DNA from: Lytechinus pictus
Taxonomy: Eukaryota
Length of the DNA: 64,000 nt
Assembly (NCBI RefSeq): GCF_037042905.1
Contig: NC_087260.1
Location: forward strand, 16,120,001 to 16,184,000
Direction of reading: 5' to 3'
Shown: positions 148-61,000 of the stretch, in pieces
Position numbering within the stretch: the first letter of the stretch is position 1
Layout: every line of letters begins with the position of its first letter
Position numbers and translations under genes: made by a program
Notes under the pieces: model-generated
The model's database searches: none
What the model saw: the letters and a program-made list of their open reading frames with translations, nothing else
What the model was told of the DNA's origin: nothing

Positions 148-2218
148 ATGACGAACTTCAAGCAGCTATCAGCCTCTTTTCCCGCCGACTCTTCCCCGAT
201 ATCGAGCGGGGAGTGGGTGAACCTATACACCCGGGCACACAGTCGAAGACAGAAGTGCATGAAGGATGCCGAAGTGATGCGGATAAATGTTCTGAAGCAG
301 CGGGAGAATGATCTGGAGAAGTACCGTCGGGAACAGCTGACGGGTGGACCGGGAAAATCGAAGATCAATTCACTGACGGTCTCAAAAACACCAGCAGGTT
401 GATTTTGTTATATTTCATATTTTTAACGATTCTATTGAATACAGTATAAATCTAAAATGTGATATGACATCAAACTATAAGCATAAAAAATAGGCATAAC
501 GAAAATGCCAATACCAATTAGTTTATTCCAATATAGAGCATATATAATCATTACAAGAAATGGAATAAGAAAGATAATTCAAGGACATTTCTTTTAATAG
601 AAAATATTTCATCATTTTGATATTTTCAGGCCTAATTAAATGCCAATACTTGGTTAATTATAATATTGCGCATATACTATTTCAAGAGAGGGATTTAAAA
701 GAGATGCAGGACAATTGAACACTAGAGAAAATAGAAGGATAATGAAAGAATGAAATTACGAAATACCAAAGGACTCAAAAGATAAACATTTTCTTTCCTA
801 TTTTTCTTAAATTCTAAACAATCAGTAGGCCTATATCACAAAATATAATTAATATTGACAAAACAAGTATATTAATTGTTTGGGCATTCTCAAATTTGAA
901 ATATCAGTGTTTTGAACTCCCCATGTATTTAACTCTGAATGCCATGATTATCACTCTATCACTAGCGTATCTACGGGGGGGGGGGGCAGTCTGCCCCCCC
1001 CTGACGAGCCACAACCCATGCAAAGGACGTATCCCTGCCCCCCTGACGAGCTTGAAAGACCTTTTTTGCCCCCCTGACGAGCTTGAAGACCTTTATTGCC
1101 CCCCCCTGACGAGCTTGAAGCTCTTTTTTTTTTTTTTTTGCTTGTCAAATTTTTTTTCTGGTACTAAATCCTTCATTTGTGATTGAAGACCTTTTTTTGT
1201 TTTTGCTTGTCAAATTTTTTGGCGGACGGTTTTGCCCCCCCCCCCCTGTGAAAAATCCTAGGTACGCCACTCCACTCTATTATAAATGTATTTAATTGTC
1301 AATCGAATGCAATAATAAGAAGGTATCACTCATAATTTATTGAATCACATTGTCCTATTCTTCTTTACAGCATTCAAGCCATCATCAAACAACTCACGCT
1401 CAACCGCACCCTCCAAAGTCTCTTTATATTCAGTATCATCTTCAAATTCCCTCTCACCCCCTGCAAAACTTAAATGGCCATCAAGTGTCCCACCGCGGTT
1501 GCGGAAACCTTGCAAAACAAGTCCACGTCGAAAGATACAGCCGACAACACTTCCCCCGCTCAGAGGGACTCTGGAAACAAATTACATCAACATCGCCAAC
1601 GTGTACGGAAATGCCTCCCGCCAGACACCGCAAGACACGACGATAGATTATAGACTCCCGCATAAAGAGTGGAGCCCGGCAGACAGCACCCCTAAAACCC
1701 TGGACGGAAACTTGTCAGGGTTGTGCGATATATCTAAAGTATGGGAACACGGGATGTGTATCTACTGCGAGCTGGAGCGAATCGAACGATCGATCCCGCG
1801 CACGCCGCGATTTTTCAAGTGGCGCTCTAAGGATAGGATGAAAAGTTTAAGTATGAATGTTGATATCGGCGGTGAAGGCGACGGTGCCTGTGTGATCGGT
1901 GCCTGTGTGATCGGTGGCAATAACAGACCAACGGAGAGGACTAAGGATGAATACGACGGCGACGATGACAACGGGATCGTGAGGAACCTCGAGTATGAGC
2001 CCGACATATATGTTGACACCACCTCAATAAGAGATGATTTGAGCATCAGGGAAAACTATAGTGGAACAAACAAAAGAAAAGTGGAAAGTGACGAGGAGGA
2101 AGTGGAAATCGACTACGAAGCCCTGGAGAAACTTGCAAAGTGGTATGAACGTTATCCAAGCACGCCCGTGTCTTTCTGGAAGCATCGCGATCAAAGGACG
2201 TTTCAGCCTTTGTTCTAG
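148..2218 (+). CDS. Uncharacterised protein, ~365 aa, 2 coding exons: 148-397, 1371-2218
   Basis: Exon 1 ORF (MTNFKQ...KTPA) ends at the phase-1 donor CAG|GTTGAT (397/398). It joins in frame to the acceptor ttctttacag|CA (1370/1371), which opens the long ORF ending at TAG 2218. Both exons are more GC-rich than their flanks. The start is uncertain: an in-frame TAG lies at 64-66 and an upstream acceptor at 46 may be in the 5'UTR. No recognisable domain. Confidence 0.6.
960..1272. mobile_element. Non-autonomous hAT-like element with internal ~30-bp repeats
   Basis: 8-bp target-site duplication CACTCTAT (952-959 and 1273-1280). Degenerate TIRs cactagcgtatcta / taggtacgccactc. Internal CCCCCCTGACGAGC repeated four times. 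Confidence 0.7.
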
Positions 2219-19544: not shown

Positions 19545-19879
19545 ATTTATTCACTTCCGGTTGAAATAACTAAACAGCATATATCTACCTAAATTCACGT
19601 TTTAGGACTACAAAGTTGTCCAAAATCGATATGAATAGATATATTTGAAATATTGATTACATTTTCATTAGTATTTGTAGCAAAATAAACACGACCATTG
19701 TTTATTTCCAAGGGTCGTCTGGGTCAAAGTTCAGATCGTGACGTCAATAGCACCGGTAAACATCGATTTACAGCTTTTTTCTGGTATGTGACGCTTCTCT
19801 TGGCTTGATCAAGATTTGCTCGCTAAAAACGCTCGATAACGCGGGTTTTAACTCAAATTATTTCCATCAAAGTATCGAT
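19545..19879. promoter_or_regulatory. Bidirectional promoter and 5'UTRs shared by PCCB and MSL2
   Basis: The divergent ATGs are only 335 bp apart. The interval holds an ETS-type CACTTCCGG (19552-19560), a full CRE TGACGTCA (19739-19746), ATCGAT cores near 19625 and 19762, and TATCGATA (19873-19880). Confidence 0.75.
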
Positions 19880-21148
19880 ATGAATGCCACGGCACTTTAT
19901 GTGTCTACATGCAGGTATATATTGCAAGCGGATTTCGAAAATGGCGAATCTTGGGGCGATCTTTACCGCTTATTGCCCTATCTAAGACAGTCTTTGTCAT
20001 GTTGCGTTTGTGGGTCGCTCTTGAACGATCCTAGGGGACCAACGGATTCGAATTGTCAACATTTTGTTTGCCGGACTTGTGTTGGTGGGAAAATGCTGCT
20101 AAAGCCATCTTGCAGCTGGTGCAAAAATTATGACAAATTTGCCGAGGTGCGACAACTCAGAATACTATTATCTTGCTACAAAAAACTATGCGAATACATA
20201 GCTGCCACACCCATCGCGCGAAGTTTTATTGGAACGAACGGCGAATCGAACAGCACTTTGACTATTTTACAAGAGGGAATGGCGATCAACACGACCCACG
20301 GAAACAACAGCGCCGGTCCGGATAAGAATCCTCATATTCTGGATATCTTGGCGAGGGTTAATCGCGAGAAAACTGAGAACGCTGACACCAAATCACCAGG
20401 GAGACGCCGTGGGCGTCCCCGACGGGACAGAGAAGGCTCGGGGGCTTCCCCAAACCCGCATCTCTTTGAGAACCCGGAAGTTCTATCCCATACGCTGGAT
20501 TCGCCATTAGATGGACTTTGCAATGGCCTTGATAGTTCAGATCAGTTTGATATGAGTAGTGACCACTCTATTTACAGTGCATCATTTTCTTCTTGTGGTT
20601 CACCTCGGATCAAAATCAAACGCAAGCGACTAAGTAATGACCTGAAATTGAAGATCAAAAAGAAGAAAAAGAAGCATGACAAAATTAAAGAGCGAACATC
20701 GGATCGGGAAGCAAGGAATGAAAGGAAAAGGAGGAGGCATCGATATCGAAAAGCAAGCGATGAATCAGAAAGTCCAGTTGACTCTGAAAAGGAGAAGCTT
20801 GTGAACGGGGACTGGACAACTAGCTCGCCTGAAGAGGACACACCAAGGAAGCAATCCGTCGTGATCTCTGGACACAGAGCGAAGTTGCTGAAAATGGGAC
20901 GAATTCTACCGACGGTCGTGGGATGCCGCTGCGGAACCTGGGGAAAAACTCCCGGAGCCAACACCTGCAGAGGAAATAGATGCCCTTGCTTTATGTCTGA
21001 GAAAGGCTGTTATAAGTGCAAATGTAAAGGGTGTCGGAATCCTATCCCTCCCCCTGAGAGCCCTGCCCCAAAGAAGAGACAGCGCCATTCTTTCAGGACT
21101 GACATTCACGGTGAAAATGAACTGGACACTGATGCTAATGATATGTAG
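19880..21148 (+). CDS. MSL2: E3 ubiquitin ligase MSL2 (male-specific lethal 2 homolog), single coding exon, 422 aa
   Basis: The N-terminus MNATALYV...RLLPYLRQSLSCCVCG...CQHFVCRTC...KPSCSWCK...CYKKLCEYI is the MSL2 RING. The C-terminal GCRCG...TCRGNRCPCF...GCYKCKCKGCRNP is the CXC domain. The first ATG is at 19880; the ORF-track start at 19805 is a TTG. Confidence 0.95.
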   Translation: MNATALYVSTCRYILQADFENGESWGDLYRLLPYLRQSLSCCVCGSLLNDPRGPTDSNCQHFVCRTCVGGKMLLKPSCSWCKNYDKFAEVRQLRILLSCYKKLCEYIAATPIARSFIGTNGESNSTLTILQEGMAINTTHGNNSAGPDKNPHILDILARVNREKTENADTKSPGRRRGRPRRDREGSGASPNPHLFENPEVLSHTLDSPLDGLCNGLDSSDQFDMSSDHSIYSASFSSCGSPRIKIKRKRLSNDLKLKIKKKKKKHDKIKERTSDREARNERKRRRHRYRKASDESESPVDSEKEKLVNGDWTTSSPEEDTPRKQSVVISGHRAKLLKMGRILPTVVGCRCGTWGKTPGANTCRGNRCPCFMSEKGCYKCKCKGCRNPIPPPESPAPKKRQRHSFRTDIHGENELDTDANDM

Positions 21149-43000: not shown

Positions 43001-46000
43001 GATTATAGTAAGAAAAAAATAAAGAATATTAACTATACAAAATAATAAAATATCTATTTGTTTATGCTACTGGGGCATCTGGCGATGTCTCCTCATTATA
43101 ACTCATGTTCCAGGGTTTTTTTTGGTGTAAATCCCTCAACGTTCATCGTGATGACAAATTGGAAGAGTAATACTAGTAATAGTACTATACATGCAAAACA
43201 AGGGAGATGAGAGGTAATTTCGTGGAGGTAACATGCGACAATGGAGCAATGCGATTGTATTTGCCCGCGGATTTTCATCTCACCGGAAGCATGTACCAAA
43301 TGACGTCATTTAAACACGTTTACGATCGTGGTTCTGTTTATACTTCCCCAGAAAGCCTGATTCCGGTCAAACAACGTTTACAAACGCACCTTTTTGTGAG
43401 TTTACGATCGGCGTTTTGAAACAGCGTTTAAATGAAAGTAAGCATGGACCCAACCGTGTTTTGGACTAATCACGTTTGGAAACGCTGATTCTGGCCTGAA
43501 AAGTGGAAGCATAAACACGGCCTTAGTTAGTATGTCTATAATTCTCTGTATTAGTTTTGTGGTCTAGTGGATATGACCCTGGACGATAGATAATAAGGTA
43601 CAGGGTTCCAATCTTGCTGTGGCAATTTTATCCTTTTGCATCCTTTTGATATTTAACAGCATCTGCAACACTCAACCTAGGTGAGGAAAATGGTAACCTG
43701 GCAGGAAGTTATTCCTTGAAGTTAAAAAAGCTATGCTATACCCAGAGTAACAACATTCAGTTTGCTGGTATTTCAGCATTTAAATTTTATCATTTCACAA
43801 CATTTTATGTTTGTAGACTTACTAGATCAAGTGGGTGTTTCATAAAGCTGTTTGTAAGTTACCAGCGACTTTATGAATGACTGGAGATCCTTTCTTGTGG
43901 TACATGAAACATGCCAGATTTCCATCCACGTTGATTAAGCGCCGAAGAAAGGATCACCAGTCATTCGTAAAGTCGATTGTAACTTAAGAACAGCTTTATG
44001 AAACACTCACCTGGTTTTACAATGATATGGTAACATTTGACCTTGATTTCATTTACTTTTTCTCGTTGAATAATTGCTGCAGCTACATCAGTTTAGCTTT
44101 AAAGAGATCTACTTCATTTTGGTCTGAGGGCATTGACTGGGACTGAAAGTGCTCCATTCCATTTTCAATATTTATCAGCTCTATGTTTTGAAAAACTTCA
44201 GACAAAGTTTGGCTTTCTGGAGAGATAAACTCTGCAGCTAGTTGCACAGGTGCACGTTCCAGGCTTCAGGATACTCATTAAAAGAAGTGTTAAATAGCCT
44301 CGTAATTTGCTGCGGGACAGAGAGGGATAACCTGAACCCCCGCTGACCCTTGACTTCCTGTAGCCATGATGGAGTTTGACGACAGGTGATTGCCTGGTGG
44401 AATCATTCTCCCCCCCTTCTAAAATATAATCAATGAAAATGATAACACACTGAACCAAAGGCACCATCGTCTTTATATTTATTTGTGAAGAGAATATTAG
44501 TCTATTATTACATCATTTGACTTCCGAACAGATCTCCCAAAGTATACATGTGTTGTGGCTTAGTGGACAGGTCTCCAGAACATGAACCATAAATTCCAGG
44601 TCCAAATCCCATCGCAGAACTCATGGCCTTTGGCAAGGTGTCAATTTGCCACTCTCCACCCAGGAGTATTAAATGAGTAACGGCTGGAAGGAATTCCTTG
44701 AATACCCAAGCACCTAATCAGGGCAGCCATGCTAAAGCTAGGGTAACAGTTTGCAATGCTTAGAAACATTGTATAAAGCGTTACTGCATATTATTATAGT
44801 TAACCCGCAATAATTCACAGTGGGAAAAAAATCAAACTTGCTTCTCTCAGAAATCTCTCTAAGTACACAAAACTGATTTATTTGAGAAAGCAAATGTCCA
44901 ACTCTACGCTCTGGAGTAAACACAACCTTATCACATTTAAAAAAAAAGGTCTGACTTGCACTAAAAAATGTTGTGTAATATTGGAACTACGAACATGGAT
45001 GTCGCAATTTGGATCTCGAGAGTGGGCAAGACTGTAATGAACAATGCAGCACAAATTTTAATGTCATTGACTTATAACAAAATATGTTAACGGGGCGGGT
45101 GGTAAATAAACCTTCCCTTACCGTGTTTACACGCTGCCCCGGCTCTTAGTGCAGATCTGTGAAACGGGCAAGACTCGCCTTTTTTTATGCGTGTAAACGC
45201 GATTAACTTGCCTCGGCTCGCGTAGCAAACATCTGTATTTTTGCCCTGCAAACCAAGTCTGATTCGAGAGCTGGGACAACCTGTAAACGCGATGCAGGAT
45301 AACCCACGAGCCGAGTCTGCACCGGCTCGCGGATCTGCACCACGAGTCAGGGCAGCGTGTAAACACGGTACCTGTCTTATCGGGGTTAAGATTTGACTTA
45401 CCGAAAGTAGATTACTCCTCCTGAGTTCTGGTAATGTTATTCTCCCTGTCCATGATCTGTTGATGGTGTAGAATATTCTCGATACAACCTGGAACAAAGA
45501 GAAATTGCCAATTTGTTAATTGGTCTAATTACCAAGGGCTGGTCTCATGAAGCTGTTTGTAAATTATGCACAATCACTTAAGGTCTCTCTGCCTTCTAAT
45601 GAGGCACATAGAAAAATTAAAGACAATTGATAACTTCATTATGCTTTGCATGTGTGTGGCTTTTTAACACTGTACTAGTAACTCATATCGGTTAAAGCTG
45701 GGGCTTCTAAATTAAAGCATACAAGTAACTATGCAAGGTTATAGATATGTTTCTATTTCACTATTGTTTTATTCTTGCCTATCATATTAAATATTTCAAT
45801 TAAAATTCTCACCAAATGTGGATAAAAAGAGCAAAGAACAACCCCCCAAAAAATCAGTGGTTAACATTAATATAACCATCTTTCCTATTAAATACAACAT
45901 ATCAGCAAAGCACATAATGTCAGAAGTGTCAAATATATATTCCATTTCTCCAAAATATTCCATTATCCAAAAGCAATGTTTAGTCTGGCACTGTGGATAT

Positions 46001-49000
46001 ATCTTAACCCACAACAATTGCGTATTTGTATTTTGAAAGTTATCAGCTCTCACAAACACTTAATAATAATCTTCACTCAGAAAGTCACGACAAGTCAGAA
46101 AAGTGCAAAATCTCCTATCATTTACACTTTTGCTGACCTGAATTTCACCCCATTATTTCTTTCTCAGTGCTAAAATGACCCAAACTGCTTTCCTTCTAGA
46201 CAGCTTCTAACAGCGTTCTTATTTCTCTCTCTTTCTCTTTTCCTACAACTCTTGCTTCTTGAGATTTCTTTTTCTCTGTTCGCTTTCTCCTCCCATCTAC
46301 ACTGTTAGAAAATTTATCCTTAAAGGACAAGTCCACCCCAACAAAACCTTGATTTGAATAAAAAGAGAAAAATCCAACAAGCATAACATTGAAAATTTCA
46401 TCAAAATCGGATGTAAAATAAGAAAGTTATGACATTTTAAAATTTTGCTTAATTTCACAAAACAGTTATATGCACATCCTGTTGGGTATGCAAATGAGTA
46501 GACTGATGACGTCATCCACTCATTATTTCTTTTGTATTTTATTATATATGATATACAGAATATTCTATTTTTCTCCTCATTGTCAAGTGAAACAACGATC
46601 AATTCCTCCCTGAACATATGAATGAGCATTTTTTTATACTATATGATTCAGTCAAGTTGGTCCTTATTGTCAAATCTGTAAAAAAAAAAAAAATAAGCAA
46701 AACTTTAAAGTGTCATAACTTTCTTATTTTACATCCGATTTTGATGAAATTTTCAGCGTTTTGATAGTTTGATTTTTCTCTATTTATTCAAACTAACATT
46801 TTTCTGGGGTGGACTTGACCTTTAAAATAAAAGAAGTTCCTGCAGCAGAGTCTTGAGAACACTTGTAATCTTACCAGATTGTGTAATCTTACAGGAAATT
46901 GGTATTTGGTGTATGGAATCTTACAAATTTCCTTCAATAAAACACCCTTTTTAAACACACCTGTTCTGTTAAATTGCAGAAAAATTCCTGTTTTATGAAT
47001 TTACAGAATGATTCTGTTATTGCTTTTTGCAAAATCTTTTTTTTTCCTGTAAAATCACGTTTTTTTAAACAGTGTACTCTCTCTTAACTCTTCAACTTTG
47101 AACTGCTCCAGTTATCTTTGTCTAGCTTAGTTTCTTTAACTCTTTCTCTAAAAAAACCCCCTCCTTTTTATAAACAGTATCAAATCTACATGTAGATATC
47201 TCTTTTTACTTGCAGCTACAGTGTATATAAATGTTACCATTTTCATTCTTTCTCTTTTCAAGGCTGGTGGGTGGGAGGGGGGAGGGGGGGGGTGCTCTCT
47301 GCATATCCTTTTTTACCACTTCTCTCATATGCTCCTATCATATGCTTTCATTGTGTCTATCCATCTCTTCTTCCCAAAACGATTGCTACCTATCTCTTTC
47401 TTTCTTTCTCCATCCCCCATTTGACCCTTTCCGTGTCCGTGGAAATTTTAATGCATCTTGTTCTGTTACTCCCAATCCCTCTTTACCTCCATCCCTCTCT
47501 CCCTCCACCCCCATCACCCTCAACCCCCATCGCCCTCCACCCCCTCTCACATACCCTCTCTATCCCTCATCCCCTCTCCCCTTTTACCCCTTCTATCTTT
47601 CCATCTCCTCTCCATAACCCCCTCTCCCTGACCCATGCCTCCTCCACCCATTTCCACCCCATCACCCTCAAGCCCCTCTCACTGCTTTAACCCTTCTATC
47701 TTTCCATCCCCTCTCCATATCCCTCCTCCCTGACCCATCTCTCTCTTCCATCCCAATACCCTCAACCACCTCTCACCTTTTACCCCTTCTCTCTCCAACC
47801 TCTCTCTTACTCATTCCCTCTCCCCTTTTACCCCTCTATCTTTCCATCCCCTCTCCATATCCCTCCTCCCTCACCCCTCTTTCTTTCCATCCATCTCTCC
47901 ATAACCCCCTCTCCCTGACCCATGCCTCCTCCACCCATTTCTCCTCATACCCTCCCCTTTTACCCCCTCTTTCTTTCCATCCCCTCTCCATATCCCTCCT
48001 CCTTGACCCATCTCTCTCCTCCACCCCATCACCCTCAACCACCTCTAACCTTTTACCCCTTCCCCCAACCTCTCTTCCTCATCCCCTCTCCCTATTACCC
48101 CCTCTATCTTTCCATCCCCTCTCCATATCCCTCCTCTCTGACCCATCTCTCTCCTCCACCCCTTCACCCTCATCCCCTTTAACCCCTCTATATTTCCATC
48201 CCTTTCTTCATAACCCCCTCGCCCTGATCCACCTAGTTCTCCTCATACCCTCCCCTTTCACCCCTCTGTCTCCCCCTCTCTCTAGCCCCATCACTTTCCT
48301 CCCTCATCCCTCTCCCTTCCCTCACCCTTCCACCCACAACACTCTCCTTCAATCCTTCCCTCTTACCCCTATCTCTCTCATACCACTTTCAATCTTAACC
48401 TCTTCTTGCTTATCTACCAAAATTGTTTTCATCAACATTTACAAAAGTTTTCTTGTTACCATAGCGACGTAAAAATAACTATGTACATATCTTCCGGCTA
48501 ATAACAAACTCTTTACACCCTACCTCCCCCATCCCCCACACTCCTTAGGCCAATGCTCCCCCAAGTGCCGCCCACGCTACGTCATCCATTGGTTCATAAA
48601 GTCAAGCGGGAGGAGTCATGTTGACTCTCAACCAATCAAATCCAAATGAACACGCATTCCTAAAAATACAACATTAAACCTAAACATTGATGAACAAAGT
48701 ACTTGGGAAGCTTGAAGAAGCAACCTGCAATCTGATTTTGATCCTCTTTTGCTGATTGTGAGCTGCTTAAACATTCACTCCGCTTTCATGAAATGATATT
48801 TGGAGACTTTTTAAAGAAATTCAGCAAGCACCAAGTACATTCAATATCGATCGAGGAAAGAGGAATATCAAATGGGGTAAGTGGTACACTGGTTTCCTCT
48901 GAACTGTCTCCTAATTCTTTATAATGAAGTTTGATTAATCTACTTTTGACGAAATTAAGTTGATGATACTGGAGTCGATGATGTGGAGCGTTGTGGCCCA

Positions 49001-52000
49001 GTGGATTAGTCTTCTGACTTAGAAACAGAAGGTCGTGGGTTTGAATCCCAGCCATGGTGTAATTCCCTTCAGCAAGAAATTTTTCCACATTGTGCTGCAC
49101 TCAACCCAGGTGAGGTGAATGGGTATCCGGCAGGATTAATTCCTTGAATGCACTGAGCGCTGAAAGGCAGCTCGAGCTAAAGCCGGGGTAATAATAATAA
49201 TAAACAATGCGCCTCGGAATAGAATAATTCTAGATAGATAGCGCTATATAAATGCCTATTATTATCATTATACTGTTATCTTGGGTATCAATCTGTCAAA
49301 ATCTTGGAACTTGCTAGTAATGCTGATTGTGACAACATGTAGTCTTAGGATAACTATATTCAAATTTTGAGCAAAACTGTTTACCTATTCAAGAATAGAA
49401 TATGAGTTCACAGTTCTCATATCACAAGGTATGATGGGTAAAATTTGAATACATTATGAAGCGAGCATTGATTGAAATATCCATGGTTGCACTATTAATT
49501 CTCGCACTTTGCTGATCATTACTCTTAAAATAGCACTCAAAATTATTGTAAGAATGCAGTAATACAAAGAATGAAAATAGTGATGTAAAACAGATCAAAG
49601 CAATAAATACAAATTTGATGATCGTCATAGTGAAGCACAAGTAGGAGATGACATTCAATAAAGTAACATTTCACATTCAATTTGAAAAAAAAATCAGGGT
49701 TACACTTGTTTATTTTTTCTCTGTTCATTCAAAGTAAGTTTGTAGTTGATTTGGCTTTAAAAATGACATTAATGAATTGAACACCATGTGTAATATGAAG
49801 AAGGGAAGGAAATACAGGCAGAAAATTTAAATGGAAAGACGAGATAGGATGAAAAGAGGAAATTAGAAGTATTCTTTTTTGAAAGTGAGTTAAGTCCTGA
49901 AAAGGACTGTAAACCAGATGAGGGGTTATTTTTTTAAAACTTATAAATGAGGGTTAATTTTTTAATTATTCTTCTTCCTAGGCCCCACTCTCCCCATCTT
50001 TATGATGGTCAAATATGCAGTTAAAGAGGGTAACTCAACTATGAGGAGATGTTGCATGCAGTGAATCTTCTGCCATAGGTTTATGCATGTTGGGATAGTC
50101 TTGCTACCGATACCCTTTCATTAAACAAACAGAAATATATTGTGTATTTTGGTTGATAATTTATTATTGCTTTCGATCCTTATTAAAAACAGGGATGTTT
50201 GGAAAAGTACTCTAAATATTTTGGTTTTGGGAGGAATATGGGTATTGTTGTAGGAATGGTGTTGGGATAAGAAAATTACTAATTGTTTAACTGGGTATAC
50301 ATCACAAGACTAAGTGATGAAATTGTTGAATCCTGGGTATGATCATGGACCTAGTAGGTCCATGATATGATCAAGGGTTTGTCAGAGTAGTTTATGTCTT
50401 GAGCTGGCATTGTTCAATCACTAAAGTGTGTGTGGTATCTTGGCTTTAAATGGGAAGCTCACCCTGACTTTATGTTGGTTTTAATAAACCAGAAAAATTG
50501 GAGAAAAATATTGGTCAATGTTTGATATAAAGCTATCACAGAATAAGAGATTTATGAATTTTCAAAGTTTTTAATTTGTGAGGTCATTTGCAAGCAGCCC
50601 CCCATATATCATGTAATATAATACCCCTTTCATAAACCCAATAAAACATATCCTCCAATTAGCCGCCTAAGAGTAATGCGGATAATTCAATAAAAATTGC
50701 GTTCACAAACTCCATAAATTATTTTCACGAGCGCCCGTCCTGAAAAAGGCGGATAATCGTCATGACAACTGGACACGCCCCCTCCAATGCGGTTGTGTTG
50801 GAAAAAGGTGACCTTGTGACCGCACCATGGCAATTATCCGCATTATTTGGAAATACGTTCATAAACTTCATAAACTTGTCCCGATGCCGCTATTATGCGG
50901 ATAATAGCAGCATCAGAATAATGCGGATAACTCTTGTCCTCCTCTGATTTTACGACCAAATTATGCTGCTATTAGCCGCATAATTGTGTTTTATTGGGTT
51001 TATGAAAGGGGTATTCATTCCATTCTTATTTCTTAATGGAAAATGATTAATTCAATATTTCTTATATAAGGGGGTATTAAATGATGAGCCTGATGATATA
51101 TCCACTACACAAATAATAACACTTCTAATTTTTATTATTATCTTGTTACTGAATGGTTTTAAGAGTTAGTAATAATTTCAATGCCAGAATTTTCTGATTC
51201 CCTACAGGACTCAGAGAAGTATTGCATTTCTTCTGCTTCTTCTTCTGTGCTGCGGAGTGGAACAGAACAATGCTATTCCAATCCCCGGACCCACAGCCCA
51301 AGAGTTCTACACAGAAACATACACAGAGGTTATAACTGAGACTGTGCCATCTTCTGAAACAGAGGGCGCTACACAAGAAAGACAGCAGAGGCCATTGACT
51401 GGTACAGCTGGAGAAGTGAGTATTTCAGGGGAACTTTTCATGAAAGGCTGTGCCAAGTGTTGAATTTCATTTTCTTTGTTACATACTCAATGAAATAATG
51501 ACAACCTCTTGAAGGTCAAATCCACCCCAGAAAAATGTTGATTTTAATCAATAGACAAAAATTGAACAAGCATAACACTGAAAATTTCATCAAAATCGGA
51601 TGCAAAATCAGACATTTTTAAGTGTTGAATTTCATTTTCTTTGTTACATACTCAATGAAATAATGACAACCTCTTGAAGGTCAAATCCACCCCAGAAAAA
51701 TGTTGATTTTAATCAATAGACAAAAATTGAACAAGCATAACACCGAAAATTTCATCAAAATCGGATGCAAAATCAGACATTTTAAAGTTTCGGTTATTTT
51801 TCACATAACAATTATATGCACAACTCAGTGACATGTTAATGAGAGACTCGATGATGTCTCTCACTCATTATTTATCTTTTTTTGTCATTGTTTGAATTAT
51901 TTCAATTTTACAGATTTGACATTAAGGACCAAGTTAACTGAACCATCTAATGTTATGCCACATGTTCAGGGAGGAATAGAACTTTGTTTCAGAGGACAAT

Positions 52001-55000
52001 GAAAAGAATATTACAATATTTCATAATTAAATACGAAAGAAAAGTGAGTGTGTGATGTTGTTAGTCTCCTCATTTACATACCGATCAGGGTGTGCATCTA
52101 ACTGTTTTGTGAAATTAAGTGGAATCTAATCAGTCATGTCATAACTTTCTTATTTTACATCAGATTTTGATGAAGTTTTCTGTGTTATGCTTGTCAGATA
52201 TTATTCTTTTTGTTCAAATCAACATTTTGTTCTGGTGGACTTGTCCTTTAAAAATAGAGTTTCTAAAATATTTTAGTTCAAGCAGGTAGATTTTTATTGT
52301 CATAATTATTAAAATTACTTTAAGACTATAACATTACATCAGTCTTGTTTAAAATAAAAATCCTTGAACTTTGTATGTGTAATATTTAGTACTGTCAAGA
52401 CATCCCAGAAGAAACAGAGATCAATCTTGTGCAAATTTCTTTCAAACAAGCATTTTAGATGTTCCCGTGGCTTTTTGTAAGACGGGGCCCCAGTATATGG
52501 AATAAAATTGGGATGGTGCTTCAGGGCACTTGTATATTTTCACTTTTTGAAGCATTGAATATTCATACAGGAAAAATAACCTTTGACTGCTTTCAGCACT
52601 GGAATAGCACCATCTTTGCTGGTGATTGCATATCATGCCATTTTTCCATTCAAAAAAATTGTGGCATTTTTTTTTTAATTTTGCCTTTCATGTAAACCAC
52701 AAAAAACACCCCTTTCATAGTATTATAATGGAATTAAAACATTTCACTTTCAAAAGCTGCTGTCTAAAAACATTTCAAAACTTTTAGCAAATTGGGAAGA
52801 AAATAATCAAAAGGACTTGTACATGTAGTATAAAAATTAACATTATTTGCAGACTTGTAGAAAAAACAGTGCATATAAATTAATGATAACCTGTTTTTTT
52901 AAGTCTATAATTTTCACTTTTTCTTTGCATTATTTAGCCACCCATTGAGACTGTAAAAAATGAAAGCCAACAGATTATCGACACTGGGGATAGTATCACC
53001 TTACACCAAACTGATACACTCAGAGCCAACACCAGTAACACAGCATTGCCTGAATCCAACACCACATCAGGTGAAAGTGAGGACTCGGAACATGCAGCTG
53101 CAGTTGTTGGCGGTGTTAACACTATGGCTGCAAGCACTGGATCTACACCCCATGTCATGCCTAATAACACCATTTTCAGTCCTGTTAGCACTGGTTCAGC
53201 ACAAAGCACCTTGGGGAATACACCTCCAACTACATCACTTTATTTGACAACGACTACAGCTGAACAACCACCAAGTCATCATAAAAAGTCCACTGAAAAT
53301 GATATCACAATATCGTATGTGACAGAAATTTATACAGAAATTATTGACAGGACAGAACTTGTGGTGTCTGACACCGATTCCAAGGATGTAGCTGCAGTTC
53401 ATGAAGGAGTTAACACTACAGCTACAAGCACCAGATCTGCATCACAAGGTAGTACAAGTAGTGAGGATGGGAGATCACATGATGTTTTAAACCAAGATGA
53501 AGACTCTGAAACATCTCCATCAGCTCATCTTTCAACAACTAGCACTTTACACCACACACCTCCAACTACAGCTCATCATTCAACAGCTAGCACTTTACAC
53601 CATACACCTCCAACTACAGCTCATCATTTGACACTGATTACAACTGATCAGCCAACAAGCCGTCACGAAAAGCCCAGTGAAAATGAAGAAACAGTATCTA
53701 TTGAACCATATGTGACAGAAATTTATACCGAAATTATTGACAGGACAGAACTTGTGGTATCTGACACCAATTCCAAGGATGCAGCTGCAGTTCATGATGG
53801 TGTTAACACTACAGCTACAAGCACCAGATCTGCACTAAAAGGTAGTGCAAGTAATGAGGATGGGAGATCACATGATGTTTTAAACCAAGATGAAGACTCT
53901 GCAACACCTCCATCATCTCATCATTCAACAACTAGCACTTTACACCATACACCTCCAACTATAGCTCATCATTTGACACTGATTACTGCTAATCAGCCAA
54001 CAAGCCGTCATGAAAAGCCTAGTGAAAATGAAGCCACAGTATCCACTGAACCATATGTGACAGAAATTTATACAGAAATTATTGACATGACAGAACTTGT
54101 GGTGTCTGACACCGATTCCAAGGATCTAGCTGCAGCTCATGAAGGAGTTAACACTACAGCTACAAGCACCAGATCTTCACTACAAGGTAGTGCCAGTAGT
54201 GAGGATGGGAGATTGCATCATGTTTTAGACCAAGATGAAGACTCTGCAACATCTCCATCAGCTCATCATTCAACACCTGGAAATTTACACCATACACTTC
54301 CAACTACAACTCATCATTCAACAGCTAGCACTTTACACCATACACCCTCAACCACATCTCACTTGACACCAAGTACAACTGGACAAACAACAAGCCGTCA
54401 GGAAAAGCCTACTGAAACTGAAGTCACAGTATCCACTGAACCTTATGTGACAGAAATTTATACAGAAATTATTGAAAGGACTGAACTTGTGGGGTCTGAT
54501 ACGGATTCCAAATCTGATCAAATCGTTTCAACTGAAGATGAGGAAGATTCTGAGCAAGCGGACAACACGGCTGATATGTCTCAAGACCTGGCAAACATTA
54601 CTCCACCTATAAGCAGAACTACTCCACACGACACTGATCAAAGCACCATCCTATCAATCTCTTACTCCAGAACTGAGCCACTCATCTTTGCAGACAGGGT
54701 GGTCATGACACCACCTTACACCGGATCAAGTCCAAACATGACAGCTCCTCAAATTACCAGCACCAGTTTTACACCAGACAGTCAAAATCTTACACCAACA
54801 CCAGCTGATCCTTCTTCACCAATATCTGATGTAACACCAGAGAATGGGGCAAGCACCAAAAGTGCATATGTATCTCCTGTAACTAGTTCTGCTGCACCTC
54901 CTGAACCAGAGGTGACAGAAATTTACACAGAAATAATGGAAATCACAGAACTAGTTATGTCTGAAGCTGAATCTGTTGATACCCCCTCAATACAAGAATT

Positions 55001-58000
55001 GGAGCAAAGAGATTCTGCCCAAAGTAGCTCCAGTTCAAGGTCAGATATTTCAAGTCCCGAAGAGATTTCTCCAACTCCAGTGTTAAGTCCAAATATTACA
55101 CCACAGCAGGAACATACAACATCTGAATGGTCTGAAAATACACCTGACCCATCTGAAATCACTGATAGTGAAACAGAGGAATATGAAATTAATGTATATC
55201 AGTATGAGAGTGTACGAGACGAGTCTGATGGAACACCAGAGCAGTATGATAGTACACCAGATCAGTCTGATAGTACACCAGATCAGTCTGATAGTACACC
55301 AGATCAGTCTGATAGTACACCAGATCAGTACAATAGTACACCGGAGCAGTATGACATTACACCGGATCAGTCTCCAAGTACACCAGAGCAGTATGATATT
55401 ATACCGGATCAGTCTGCTAATACACCAGATCAGTATGATAGTACACCAGATCAGTCTGCTAGTACACCGGAACAGTATGATATTACACCAGAGCAGTATG
55501 ATATTACACCGGATCAGTCTGCTAGAACACCAGATCAGTATGATAGTACACCAGATCAGTATGATAGTACACCGGAGCAGTATGATATTACACCAGATCA
55601 GTCTGCTAGTACACAGGAACAGTATTATAATACACCGGAGCAGTATGATATTACACCTGATCAGTCTGCTAGTGCACTGGAACAGTATGATAGTACACCA
55701 GATAAGTCTGAGAGTACTCCAGATCAGTATGATAGCACATCACAGCAGGAGCATGTTAAAAACAGTTTATCTTCTGCATCATATGTCACTGAGACCTACA
55801 CAGAAATCGTGGAAATTACCGAGATTTCAATACCTGACACTAAACCTGAGACACAATCAAAGGAAAGTATCTTACATGAGTCATCACTATCAGAAGTAAC
55901 AAGCAAACCTATGCCTTCGACAGAAGGTTATCGTACGGAAGACAGTGACTCAACTCAACAAGGTACTAGATCATCACCAGTCGGTTCAAGCAATATTGCA
56001 AAGACGAATACAGTTCAACCTGATGCCGCTTACACCTTTAGTCCACCTTCACAAAATGCCAGTGCCATACAACCTGGCCCAAACTCTACCACTGATGCTT
56101 CTGCACCTACAGAGCATTCAGTTGCTTCAACAATTACATATTCAACACTAACAGAACCCCAGGCTCAACAGCCTGCGACTTCATTGGATAGACCAAATTC
56201 AGCAACTGCTTTGCAGGATGAAATGCCTCAGGGTGACCAACTGGATGATACAGAACCATCATCAGAACCCTTTATTATGGAAGTCAACACAGAAGTGATA
56301 GAATATACCGAACTTGTGATGGCTGACTCTGATGGAGAGTCTGATTACAATCCTGTAGACTCAGACGATGAGGGTTCCGTGTTGAGAGATGCCAACGCCA
56401 ATGACGGGGTGGATAGTGGCGACGCACCGGGTTCTGATGAAAGTCAGATCAAGGAACCCGAAGGTGTTGCATCTGCTGATAACAGTTCTACCACGCAGAG
56501 GTCTGCTTCCACAGTGGATACCTCTGATTGGACAACAAACAGCTCTGACTCTGCATCACACATTCCTGTGTACGCGATGGACCGAGTTGATTACGTACTA
56601 GACAATTCTTATTCAATATCAGAGAGTCTTGAGTATACATTACACAGTAACGATTACAGTCTGGACAGTTCAACACCAGACAGCTCTGATTCCTTACAGG
56701 GCAGTTCTGAATTGACACCAGACAGTTCTGATTCTACACCAGGCAGCCCAGATTCCATACTAAGCAGTTCTGATTCGATAACAAACAGTTCTGATTCTAC
56801 ACCAGGCAGCTCTGATTCCATACTGGGCAGTTCTAATTTAACACCAGACAGTTCTGATTCTACACCAGTCAGCTCTGATTCCAAACTGGGCAGTTCTGAT
56901 TCCACACGAGACAGTTCTGATTCTACACCAGGCAGCTCAGCTTCCTTACCAGACAGTTCTGATTCCACACGAGACAGTTCTGATTCTACACCAGGCAGCT
57001 CTGATTCCATACTGGGCAGTTCTAATTCGACGCCAGACAGTTCTGATTCTGCACCAGGCAGCTCAGCTTCCTTACCAGACAGTTCTGATTCCACACAAGA
57101 CAGTTCTGATTCTACATCAGGCAGCTCTTATTCCATACTGGGCAGTTCTAATTCGACACTAGGAAGTTCTGATTCCACACTAGGCAGCTCATCTTCCTTA
57201 CCAGACAGTTCTGATTCGATGGTGGATATCGTTTATTACATGGACAGTTCCGACTCTATATTGAATAGTTCTGATATTATAGTAGAAATCTCTGATTCTA
57301 TATCAGATAGGGATGATTATACACCAGATAGTTTTGATAATACAATGAACACTTCGGATTCTTCACAAGACAGTGGTGATTCTACACTAGTTAGTTCATC
57401 TTCCACACAAGACAGCAAAGATTATACACTGGACACGTCTTATTTTACACTAGATATTTCTAGTATGAATAGTTCTGATTATACACTTGGCAGTGTCAGT
57501 TTGACACAAGACAGTCCAGATTATTCACTGGACAGTCCTGATTATACACCAGAAAATTCTGATTACACACTGGATAGTGCTGAGGCTACACCAGACAGTC
57601 CTAGTTATACACCTAATGATGTTGACTCTACACCAGACAATCGTGAAGCAACACCAGACCGTCCCAATTACACACTCAACGGTGCTGGAGACACATCAGA
57701 TAGTCCTGATTATACTACACGGGCTAGTCCACAGTCCACACCAGCCAGTGTCAATTCTGCTTCGAACACCCCCAGTGCTACACTAAATGACACTGTTGAC
57801 CCTTCAACAACAGCAGAATCTGCACTTCAGGAACCAAGTCAATTGAATAAAACAGTAAGTAATACGGCTCTCACAGAGACCCCTGTTAGTGATGACATCA
57901 CCTCTCCCCAAGACTCAAGTTTGACTGAAACTTACACAGAAACCGTGGAAATTACAGAGCTGTTCATAGGTGATGAAAATGACTGAAAATCTTTCAACTT

Positions 58001-61000
58001 TGTGTACCAAAACACAAGTTCCACTGGGGTGACTGATATACTTTGAACTCTCTCTACCAAAACGGAAGTTCCATCGGTCATGCACAGAATATCACCCCCT
58101 CCCCCAAAACCATTTTGACTGAAACTTACAATGAAGCCATGGAAATTACAGAACTGAAGATAGGTGAAAGAAAAAGACAAAGCTTTCTTCATCAAAAACA
58201 GTGCTTCAATTGGTCCTGCAAAGACTATTATAGCAAGAGGTGAAACTTATTGTTTGATAGGACCAAAGATGGTCAAAAGCTGCTGTATGTTGTCAAGAAT
58301 TCTGTGCTATTTTAAGATAATGTTTCTGTGCAGGTATCATCACAATCACTGCAGGGTTGACCGAACCTTGAACATGTGTCTTCAAAATGTAATATATTGG
58401 GAAAGTGTAAAAACATGGCTCTTTATTTGTAGAGAACTACGAAAGTGCAAAGTAATCACTTTCCTATTCAGCAAATTCAGTATTTTCATGACTATATTTC
58501 TGTAGCGCATGATGAAAAATGTCCACACACCAAATTTGTAGACTATCAGTTCATGCTGGCTCAAGGATGGCCACATAAATACCCAATGGCCTCATTCAAA
58601 TCAGATCAGGAAATTGGCCTAGTTCATAACTGTTTGAATCTGCTATGTTTTTAACAAAGCTGTTCATAAATTAGGAGCAATTTTACAGTCAGTCGGCAGG
58701 TCCCAAGAAAGTGGCTTCTTTCATCCAAGTGATATTCATGACTAGAGAGGTTTTGCATATTTAATGAGCTTGATGCGGACCAAAACACCTCTTTTCATTC
58801 GGTCATTGCTGCTCTAATTGGGCATCGAATTTCATGATTTTGGTATCATTGTAAAGGAGAAGAATCATTCTTTTAGGTCATGTGTTTGCATTTATTCAAA
58901 GATTTTGTAATATAGATTAAAATTTTGATCTAAAATATGCTACAAAATAATTATTTTCACCTGACAAAAGCTGCTATTTTTACACTTTATCTTTGTTTGA
59001 GCCCAAATTATTTTTAGATCATCATAAAGCTGAATATGTATGCTTTAAAATGGTATAGGTTTCAAAACAAGAATACTGCACTCTGATTGGTCAAAGAGAC
59101 CACACACTGGCAAATTCCAACGGTTCCAGTGCCTGGGTTCATGGGAAGGTCACACTTCCCATGTGGTAATCTCCTCAAATTACCTGCTCCTGTTGTTTTG
59201 TGAACCTTATCCAGCCAATCAGAACTCTGGATTTCATGCAAGTACAAAATTTCAGAAATCTCGTCTTGTACCTTGGTGGGAAAAGTGTGATCTTGACCCG
59301 ATTAAAAGGTGCCGCATATCAAGAGTGGCATTGTGAGAAAGTACAGAAGTTAAGCTTTATGGTGATATATATCATTGAGGCTCAAAATAAAAAGTTTTGC
59401 ACAATTTGCAAAAGAAAACAGAGGAAGAAAATTCAGTTGTGAGGCACATTTTCAGGCCAGAAATTCACTTATTTATCAAAATATTGTATACAAAATAAAT
59501 GACCAATATGAAAGAGTAACATTTACTCTATCTGATGGTGCAATGATATTTCATTTGACTTGAGGTTAAATCAGGTAAATTCTTAGAGAAAGAAAATATC
59601 ACGAATCACAAGATTTTGCAAGAAGGATTCAGCCACGAGATGATTTGGATGAATCTGGCCTTTTTGCTCATTAGCATAGGGGCCTGCGGTCTGACTGTTT
59701 ACAAACAACTGGTGATCCTTTCTTAAGGTAAGATTATGCACACCAAGTTTTCATTGGTGTGGATTTAGCTCCTAAGAAAGGATCATCAGTCATTTGTTAA
59801 GTTGCTCGTATCTTACGAAAAGCTTTATGAAACACACACCAGGTGCAATTTGCACTGATTTCAACGAGGCTAGGTATTCATAAGACCACATCTCTGACCC
59901 TACAAGCCAATTCTCACAATATTTGGGCTGCGGACGTTTCTCTATCATGTTGAATCGCAAATAATTTCTTATTTTTCATTTCATCACTTCAGAACAGTAT
60001 CCATTTTGATAAGGTGCTTCCTGGCATTATGACCAAGTGGTGATCAGTAACAAATTATTCTCCACCACCACCATTTGTGATAGATAACATATTTTATTCT
60101 CTTTATTGGCAGTATCTTGATGTATAATATGTCTCAATGCAATAATAATGCACCGCATTACAAATGATCTAAGCCATGCCCAGTTGCCCCGTGTCATAAG
60201 AAACTTCGTCATACATTAAAATGTCAACAACAAAAAAAATCACAATTTTGGCACTCCATATACTCCCACTTCTTAAACTCATGAACAACTTGAAATGTAC
60301 ATTATAGAATGCCCGAGGGTAGAGAACCACTTTTTTCAGATATATATTTATACTTACTGTTGTTATATATCTTGAGTGAAACTCGGGGGCATCCTGTAAA
60401 AACGTTAAGCCAGGATGAGAATCAACTATATCCTGGAAAAAAAAGAAGAAAGAAATGGTTAAAGAGAAAAATACTTCTGAAAAGATTTCTGGTTTAAGTA
60501 TCAAATTGAATACCTGCCCAGGGCTCTGCTACACAACGATTTGCAATCAATCACTAAATGGCAATGACCAATCAAATTCATTGTTCTATGTGCCTTAGGT
60601 TCTAAACACTGGCCAGGACCCAATCAACAATGATCTTTCATATTTATGGTCAATCACAAACCTTTGTGTTACGGGGCCTTTAACTAAATGAAAGGCACCT
60701 TACCAAGAGTCAGAGCTTAGTCTTTTCCACAGGAATCCTGTCAGGCATCTTTTCATGGCTAATTCTCACATTTTATCAGAGACAAAATAATTGGGGAATC
60801 TGGAAAATATGCAGGGAAAGATGCTTTGTGCCTTTATAGTGAAATTCCTGCCAAAAGACAAGTCATAGGATCTTGGTAAGGTGCCTTGAAATCAAATCTT
60901 CTGGGCTCTGTCTTACAAAGACTTACGATTGATCCGATTAACCACAACTATAGGAGGCCAGCAACGCCAACATCCAGAATGCATGTTTGTTCAATATGTT

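Follow-up and report, generated by a model that had tools for sequence, protein, structure and literature searches.

An intronic gene of the sea urchin Lytechinus pictus predicted to encode a secreted, disordered, mucin-like polyanion punctuated by a conserved short motif

The longest open reading frame (ORF) in a stretch of 64,000 nucleotides (nt) of the Lytechinus pictus genome (NCBI RefSeq assembly GCF_037042905.1, contig NC_087260.1, positions 16,120,001 to 16,184,000; hereafter the window) appears to start with TTG and is located within an intron of another gene, which raises the question of whether it belongs to a real gene and, if so, what kind of protein this gene encodes. The ORF occupies 53046..57986 on the plus strand, encodes 1646 amino acids (aa) and is more than three times longer than the next one in the ORF list. 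An earlier note, made by a model from the sequence alone, had claimed that the ORF does not stand alone, and that two upstream exons splice onto it in phase and supply a signal peptide. Our analysis agrees with this claim, including the splice sites. It is almost certain that the locus is a functional three-exon gene and that its product enters the secretory pathway, the two claims being taken jointly. The long intronic ORF is part of a complete and conserved gene for a secreted protein, the structure of which is now fixed. The gene adds an uncharacterised member to a broad class of secreted, acidic, mucin-like repeat proteins that are each confined to certain lineages, and its most distinctive feature is a conserved short motif that punctuates the chain.

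Gene structure and nesting

The coding exons of the gene and the surrounding parts of its host, a gene for the PP2A B'' subunit (PPP2R3), are as follows.

48872..48876, plus strand: coding part of exon 1, ATGGG followed by the donor GTAAGT, with a Kozak-like start context (atcaaATGG, A at -3 and G at +4)
51208..51415, plus strand: exon 2, 208 nt, with acceptor ccctacAG and donor GTGAGT, as read from the DNA
52938..57986, plus strand: exon 3, 1682 codons and the stop, containing the 1646-aa ORF and collinear to the final residue with the Strongylocentrotus purpuratus protein XP_011678194.1 (see below)
60358..60432, minus strand: host PP2A B'' exon upstream of the host intron, with a gtaagt donor, matching positions 26-59 of Pfam EF-hand_13 (E 4e-9)
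45489..60357, minus strand: host intron of 14,869 nt with gt..ag ends, containing the whole nested gene
45402..45488, minus strand: host PP2A B'' exon downstream of the host intron, with a ttccag acceptor, matching positions 54-85 of EF-hand_13 (E 6e-9)

The frame of exon 3 is open from position 52938, directly behind the TAG of the acceptor ttatttAG, and an open run of 1682 codons has a log10 P of -50.6 given the base composition of the window; in each of the remaining five frames, this DNA contains 55-210 stops. With a coding part of only 5 nt in exon 1, an exon 2 that leads from phase 2 to phase 0 and the giant exon 3, the spliced coding sequence has a length of 5262 nt, divisible by three, ends in its only stop codon and gives a product of 1753 aa. 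The 11-mer ATGGGGTRAGT, which covers the short first exon and its donor, occurs once on both strands of the 64 kb, at exon 1, with 0.04 occurrences expected. Exon 2 encodes the remainder of the signal peptide, the first copy of the motif and a conserved RPLTG, and the presence of the motif in exon 2 as well ties exons 2 and 3 together.

All coding exons (48872-57986, plus strand) are found inside one host intron and on the strand opposite to the host. Both host exons match contiguous stretches of EF-hand_13, and the exon at 45402..45488 additionally matches the PDB entries 4mew, 4i5j and 4i5l (PP2A B'' alpha and beta, E ~3e-9). The antisense nesting in a PPP2R3 intron, which had been put forward in the earlier note, was thus recovered with exact boundaries, gt..ag ends and flanking EF-hand_13 exons.

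Conservation in other sea urchins

A homology search covering 5.8 billion clustered proteins returned a single relative, the S. purpuratus protein XP_011678194.1 (P0001; 1411 aa), which is annotated as 'PREDICTED: mucin-12-like' and matches the window protein with an E of 1e-145 and 39% identity over 75% of the query. Its N-terminus, MGTLRTIAFVFLLCCALVEKNNAVPIP...RPLTGPVAE/PS, which starts with MG/T, reproduces the products of both the exon 1/2 and the exon 2/3 junction (slashes mark the junctions). In an end-to-end alignment the two proteins are collinear to their last residues, the compared C-terminal end being EITELLMSDEKD, and they have a common order of HH/TP repeats, TPEQYD heptads, SSDSTP/DYT heptads and a C-terminal motif directly before the stop. 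XP_011678194.1 differs in that it is 342 aa shorter, carries two N-terminal long repeats instead of four and has a shorter SSDS block. Judged from these alignments, the window gene is the ortholog of the gene for XP_011678194.1. The S. purpuratus entry is no more than a computational prediction that was named automatically, and 'mucin-12-like' reflects composition and not orthology. The gene had been described as hidden in the earlier note; this is correct with respect to the ORF list, in which it is invisible, but the S. purpuratus ortholog was already present in RefSeq as a model with both junctions. A literature search with the accession XP_011678194.1, with the RefSeq name combined with sea urchin and with six peptide strings gave zero matches. 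The S. purpuratus counterpart is predicted but unstudied. The one unusual feature of the window gene is the conserved motif.

A profile search also found a 96-aa fragment (P0004) on L001, a 1.5-kb genomic contig of the Logan assembly of SRR28370579, which originates from a Strongylocentrotus-like urchin. Exon 2 is found at 76-304 of this contig with the same acceptor, GTGAGT donor and phases as in the window and with a length that differs by 21 nt, i.e., 7 codons, while exon 3 starts at 876, behind cacttAG. When the window was compared with L001 by blastn, alignments were obtained for exon 2, at 75% identity, and for parts of exon 3, but not for any of the intron between them, which spans ~570 nt in L001 vs. 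1522 nt in the window. As the L001 counterpart has only ~570 nt, the extra length in the window is probably due to the insertion of a transposable element.

According to the Nei-Gojobori method, dN/dS relative to L001 is 0.46 for exon 2 (dS 0.49) and ~0.53 for the first part of exon 3, with a nearly saturated dS of 0.85. This pattern indicates moderate purifying selection, as would be typical for disordered secreted proteins. Frameshifts, stops or a dN/dS near 1 in close relatives had been named in advance as evidence against the gene; in the comparison with L001 the indels are multiples of three and dN/dS is about 0.5. The tandem-repeat periods in the window gene (345, 48, 63 and 21 nt) are likewise all multiples of three. 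The improbable length of the open frame, the in-phase consensus splice sites, the unique 11-mer at exon 1, the junctions and collinearity of the ortholog, the exon boundaries of L001, the dN/dS values and the repeat periods in threes are the reasons for which we consider the gene to be real. Two word-index searches for homologs, one with exon 2 alone and one with the two-species alignment of the region from motif 6 to motif 7, found nothing.

Properties of the predicted protein

The N-terminus consists of MGTQR, a hydrophobic core and EQNNA, and exhibits the n/h/c layout of a signal peptide with a maximum of 3.35 on the Kyte-Doolittle (KD) scale in an 11-aa window. The same layout is conserved in the S. 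purpuratus ortholog, the pattern common to both species being MGT.R.IAF..LLCC..VE.NNA.PIP. The peptide had earlier been written with five Leu residues, and this has to be corrected to six. Candidate cleavage sites are located after CCG18 and after NNA24. A cleavable signal peptide is thus predicted to direct the protein into the secretory pathway. Past this peptide, 19-aa hydropathy windows reach a maximum KD of 0.71, i.e., neither a transmembrane (TM) segment nor a glycosylphosphatidylinositol (GPI)-like tail was detected, and the chain ends in ...ELFIGDEND. The only Cys residues are at positions 16-17, within the signal peptide, so that the mature chain is free of Cys, as it is in the ortholog. 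RGD and furin (R.[KR]R) sites are absent from both proteins, and dibasic pairs number at most one.

The mature chain is composed of 18.8% Ser, 14.4% Thr, 10.3% Asp, 8.0% Pro and 7.5% Glu, corresponding to 33% Ser+Thr and 18% Asp+Glu. With 308 Asp+Glu against 56 Lys+Arg, its net charge is approximately -250. It carries 26 N-x-S/T sequons and 18 S-x-E sites, and 24 of its 59 Tyr residues have at least three Asp/Glu and no basic residue within five positions on either side. Acidic surroundings free of basic residues are the context in which tyrosylprotein-sulfotransferase (TPST) sulfates Tyr. The earlier description of the chain, namely no Cys after the signal peptide, no TM or GPI-like tail, and richness in Ser, Thr, Asp and Glu with N-x-S/T and S-x-E sites, is in agreement with these counts.

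From its N-terminus, the chain comprises, in order, the signal peptide, a motif copy, a Ser/Thr-rich region, four His/Thr/Pro repeats, a unique Pro/Thr/Ser (PTS) stretch and another motif copy. These are followed by ~26 TP[DE]Q[YS]D[SI] heptads, a motif copy, a unique stretch and a further motif copy, and finally by an acidic stretch, ~26 SSDSTP[GD] heptads, DYT heptads, the C-terminal motif and the stop. The repeated blocks are encoded as follows.

53176..54511, plus strand: four repeats of 345-393 nt (115-131 codons), His/Thr/Pro-rich and terminated by the motif (TRF period 345; families D4, D6, D10 and D15)
55078..55811, plus strand: array of ~26 x 21 nt encoding TP[DE]Q[YS]D[SI] heptads with Tyr in an acidic context; the same heptads occur in the S. 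purpuratus ortholog
56606..57298, plus strand: array of ~26 x 21 nt with a 63-nt super-unit encoding SSDSTP[GD] heptads, from the DNA repeat analysis
57477-57612, plus strand: array of DYT-type heptads, from the DNA repeat analysis

Conserved HHTP repeats are present in both proteins, which contain 13-15 HH pairs. There are 21 SSD and 14 DSS sites, the DSS sites being confined to the 7-aa SSDSTPx units. Two further ORFs, 55168-55899 (plus strand, 243 aa) and 56654-57094 (minus strand, 146 aa), are located entirely within the 21-nt arrays and are repeat artefacts rather than genes.

The earlier note had recognised no known domain, and our Pfam search of the window protein likewise gave nothing credible. 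A match to Cdh1_DBD_1 (PF18196), with 29 bits for the window ORF and 16 bits for the S. purpuratus protein, was rejected as compositional; a motif copy marks the start of either alignment, none of the individual stretches reaches significance and the domain is implausible for a secreted protein. A feature-based search of the ESM Atlas was uninformative (best score 0.74). AlphaFold2, run on 1018 aa in single-sequence mode, gave a mean pLDDT of 33, no fold and essentially no secondary structure. On the basis of this model and of the composition, the mature chain is very probably a disordered polyanion.

A conserved motif of about 20 residues

The window gene carries nine copies of the motif (DNA family D7).

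51308-51355, 53319-53366, 53712-53759, 54057-54104 and 54447-54494, plus strand: motif copies 1-5, copy 1 being in exon 2
54912-54959, 55785-55832, 56274-56321 and 57921-57968, plus strand: motif copies 6-9, the last one at the C-terminus

The nine copies from the window and seven from the S. purpuratus ortholog, 16 in total, align without internal gaps and yield the consensus EP.VTE.YTE[IV].E.TELV.SD..SK, in which T13, E14 and T19 never vary, and T9, E10 and Y12 hardly do. The copies are collinear between the two species, and only the N-terminal long repeats (four vs. two) make a difference to their number. Interspecific identity amounts to 73% in the motif cores vs. 47% in the other aligned residues, a further 405 residues being unalignable. 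The older paralogous copies within the window exhibit a pS of 0.67 and a pN of 0.31, and the low pN relative to the high pS indicates that the constraint acts on the peptide and not on a DNA or RNA element.

Regarding the conformation of the motif, eight of the 15 local hydropathy maxima after the signal peptide fall within motifs, while the other seven, including the three strongest, fall outside. Seven copies were tested for their hydrophobic moment, and six of these show a maximum at 85-105 degrees, which corresponds to helical periodicity. Taking these data together with the AlphaFold2 models discussed below, the motif may be an order-prone segment that folds conditionally, with both helix and strand in play.

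A profile of the motif was searched against 1.84 billion representatives. It retrieved the S. purpuratus protein (eight stretches, E 6e-93), the exon 2 fragment mentioned above and two more matches, P0002 and P0003, which are unrelated short tandem-repeat proteins and were dismissed as spurious. The library evidently contains hardly any echinoderm proteomes and lacks even the window protein itself, so that these matches do not fix the range of the family. In the PDB, the motif profile found no chain at E <= 10.

Possible function and comparison with known systems

The question that follows is what such a protein could do. In the picture that we propose, the His/Thr/Pro repeats and the TP[DE]QYD and SSDSTP heptad blocks would be extended, fast-evolving polyanionic spacers. 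These would carry mucin-type O-glycans in the PTS regions, phosphate on Ser in the SSDS and S-x-E sites and possibly sulfate on Tyr, and would thereby form an extended, hydrated brush that binds water and Ca2+. The nine amphipathic acidic motifs, read as the sole conserved hydrophobic elements of the mature chain, would act as multivalent stickers. By binding among themselves or to a folded partner they would give rise to a reversible extracellular gel, coat or matrix, in which non-covalent motif contacts would replace the disulfide multimerisation of classical mucins. The overall picture, a nested gene for a secreted polyanionic scaffold of mucin type with sticker motifs, seems to us reasonably probable, although the role of the motif as a sticker is a tentative suggestion when taken by itself. 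A more far-reaching version is that the motif represents an undescribed extracellular interaction module, acidic, amphipathic, conditionally folding and present ninefold, which cross-links a Cys-free mucin-like polyanion. Such cross-links could be made to itself, to Ca2+ or mineral, or to a folded partner, to which the motif would add a strand or a helix; we regard this version as doubtful. A network former of this stickers-and-spacers type would so far be seen only in strongylocentrotid and related urchins.

Several points limit this picture. The modification state of the mature chain is predicted from composition, and both partner binding and self-association of the motifs are predictions. 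In the AlphaFold2 run of 1018 aa the motifs do not assemble, although a single-sequence run cannot decide on self-association. The structural models also disagree on the conformation of the motif, since AlphaFold2 with the 16-row motif alignment reached a pLDDT of 80 (84-91 in the core) with neither helix nor sheet, whereas the single-sequence run placed its only helix, at low confidence, on motif copy 3. In addition, a dN/dS of ~0.5 implies only moderate constraint outside the motifs, and in Lytechinus pictus the case for the gene is built on sequence.

Several known systems offer a comparison. Vertebrate mucins, both the membrane-bound ones such as MUC12 and the gel-forming ones, resemble the window protein in their long Pro/Thr/Ser tandem repeats and their passage through the secretory pathway, and O-glycosylation would be expected in both. 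A PTS tandem-repeat region is indeed present in the window protein (Ser+Thr 33%, Pro 8%). However, membrane mucins possess SEA, EGF and TM segments, all three of which are missing here, and gel-forming mucins possess vWD, CysD and cystine-knot domains, which are missing as well, together with any Cys in the mature chain. The window protein is also far more acidic than vertebrate mucins. Orthology to MUC12 was ruled out, given the absence of SEA, TM and EGF. Dentin phosphophoryn (DSPP) and the SIBLING/SCPP proteins share with the window protein Ser/Asp-rich repeats, acidity, disorder and secretion. Nevertheless, the window protein lacks RGD, its unit is the 7-aa SSDSTP[GD] instead of (DSS)n, the gene structure is different and no homology was found, so the view taken in the earlier note, that the SSDS runs resemble phosphophoryn in composition only, is upheld. 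Disordered multivalent binders, such as bacterial Fn_bind repeats and stickers-and-spacers scaffolds, likewise repeat short order-prone segments within a disordered chain. Fn_bind and viral mucin-like G-protein clusters were among the low-scoring ESM Atlas neighbours (0.70-0.74, far below significance), and the likeness to such binders and scaffolds is to be read as an analogy without homology.

Alternative explanations

A role as a biomineral-matrix phosphoprotein, one that would be secreted by skeletogenic, tooth or spine cells, phosphorylated on its SSDS sites, occluded in calcite and able to steer mineral growth in the manner of phosphophoryn or phosphodontin, was the first option named in the earlier note; it gained no support and appears unlikely to us. 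It would suit the high acidity, the heptads rich in SSD and DSS, the S-x-E sites and a disordered Cys-free chain like that of many matrix proteins. That urchins do use acidic repeat phosphoproteins is known from phosphodontin (Glean3:18919), which has a signal peptide, 35 EISSGEGEQPK repeats, an Asp-rich tail and 25% Glu (PMC2830187). Like the window protein, phosphodontin is a lineage-specific disordered urchin protein with a signal peptide and many short acidic repeats, but it lacks the YTE motif and the sequences are unrelated; identity with phosphodontin was rejected because of its different repeat unit, EISSGEGEQPK. Furthermore, the features that mark the known urchin matrix families (C-type lectin, MSP130-like or Pro/Gly-rich) are all missing from the window protein. 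Tryptic strings from the motif and the heptads were not found in the supplements of the tooth, spicule and test/tooth phospho-proteomes of S. purpuratus (PMC2614417, PMC2909932, PMC2830187) nor in paper texts, a weak negative given that these studies relied on 2006 Glean3 models and included no deglycosylation.

Somewhat less likely still is an adhesive or cohesive secretion, e.g., of the tube-foot footprint, of larval attachment or of the egg coat, in which beta-rich motifs would form the cross-links, and His and acidic residues would coordinate metal. The conservation of the His-rich HHTP repeats in both species, the abundance of beta-branched residues in the motifs, their extended conformation in the model with a pLDDT of 80 and the multivalent architecture would all be in line with it. 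On the other hand, the protein has no sequence match to described adhesive proteins, and the peptide strings had no match in paper texts. The adhesive proteins described from urchins and sea stars (Nectin, Sfp1) are Cys-rich and multi-domain, and a Cys-free, domain-free protein is the opposite of these. The position of the motifs could also suggest a polyprotein precursor, in which they would serve as processing or sorting signals and the blocks would be released as acidic glycopeptides, as they are found precisely between blocks of different composition, as well as after the signal peptide and at the extreme C-terminus. We consider this improbable, since neither species has a furin site, there is only one dibasic pair in total and the C-terminal copy has nothing to release. 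Moreover, we know of no protease that recognises such a motif. Finally, about one third of the ORF consists of 21-nt arrays, which can stay open by chance and give spurious ORFs, so that a repeat-driven open frame or a decaying pseudogene without function has to be taken into account. This is very improbable, however, as the non-repetitive two thirds are open too, collinearity with a protein from another genus extends from Met to stop, and the exon boundaries are kept while the intron is not. The repeat periods and indels in multiples of three, and a motif peptide that is conserved while synonymous sites are near saturation, argue in the same direction.

Compared with these alternatives, the secreted polyanionic scaffold of mucin type remains our preferred reading. 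The protein illustrates well how a mucin-like polyanion can occur in nature without disulfides, its only conserved elements being short, repeated and moderately hydrophobic motifs. If these motifs mediate assembly or docking, it would provide a tractable model of how disordered extracellular proteins build gels, coats and mineral-associated matrices.

Other features of the locus

Two further elements of the nested gene were located outside its coding sequence.

48590..48670, plus strand: putative core promoter with CCAAT/ATTGG at ~48596 and ~48641 and a TATA-like TAAAAATA at ~48662, as read from the sequence
58091..58167, plus strand: decayed DNA duplicate of the C-terminal motif (family D14, 77% identity to 57897-57973), in the 3' untranslated region (UTR)

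The putative promoter elements are situated ~200 nt ahead of the ATG. The CCAAT and TATA-like elements are immediately preceded by a C/T-rich low-complexity tract of ~1.1 kb (47450-48550), with a GC skew of about -0.5 and many degenerate direct repeats. A scan of the 5' region for bacterial-type promoters and terminators was negative, the tool being irrelevant to this gene. Intron 2 contains a 165-nt tandem duplication of 98% identity within 51455-51788, as well as MITE-like inverted-repeat arms (51509-52266), which are found again 5 kb further upstream within the host intron (46305-46825). The decayed motif copy begins ~105 nt past the stop and looks like what is left of a terminal duplication and now forms part of the 3' UTR. 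The first AATAAA on the plus strand after the stop is found at 59386, still inside the host intron.

Elsewhere in the window, an ORF of 292 aa (1340-2218, plus strand) has no Pfam match. A single-exon ORF of 447 aa (19805-21148, plus strand) encodes an MSL2 homolog (zf-RING_10, E 4e-30; MSL2-CXC, E 3e-13). MSL2 and PPP2R3A are presumably also neighbours in human 3q22, in which case their proximity in the window would represent conserved microsynteny.

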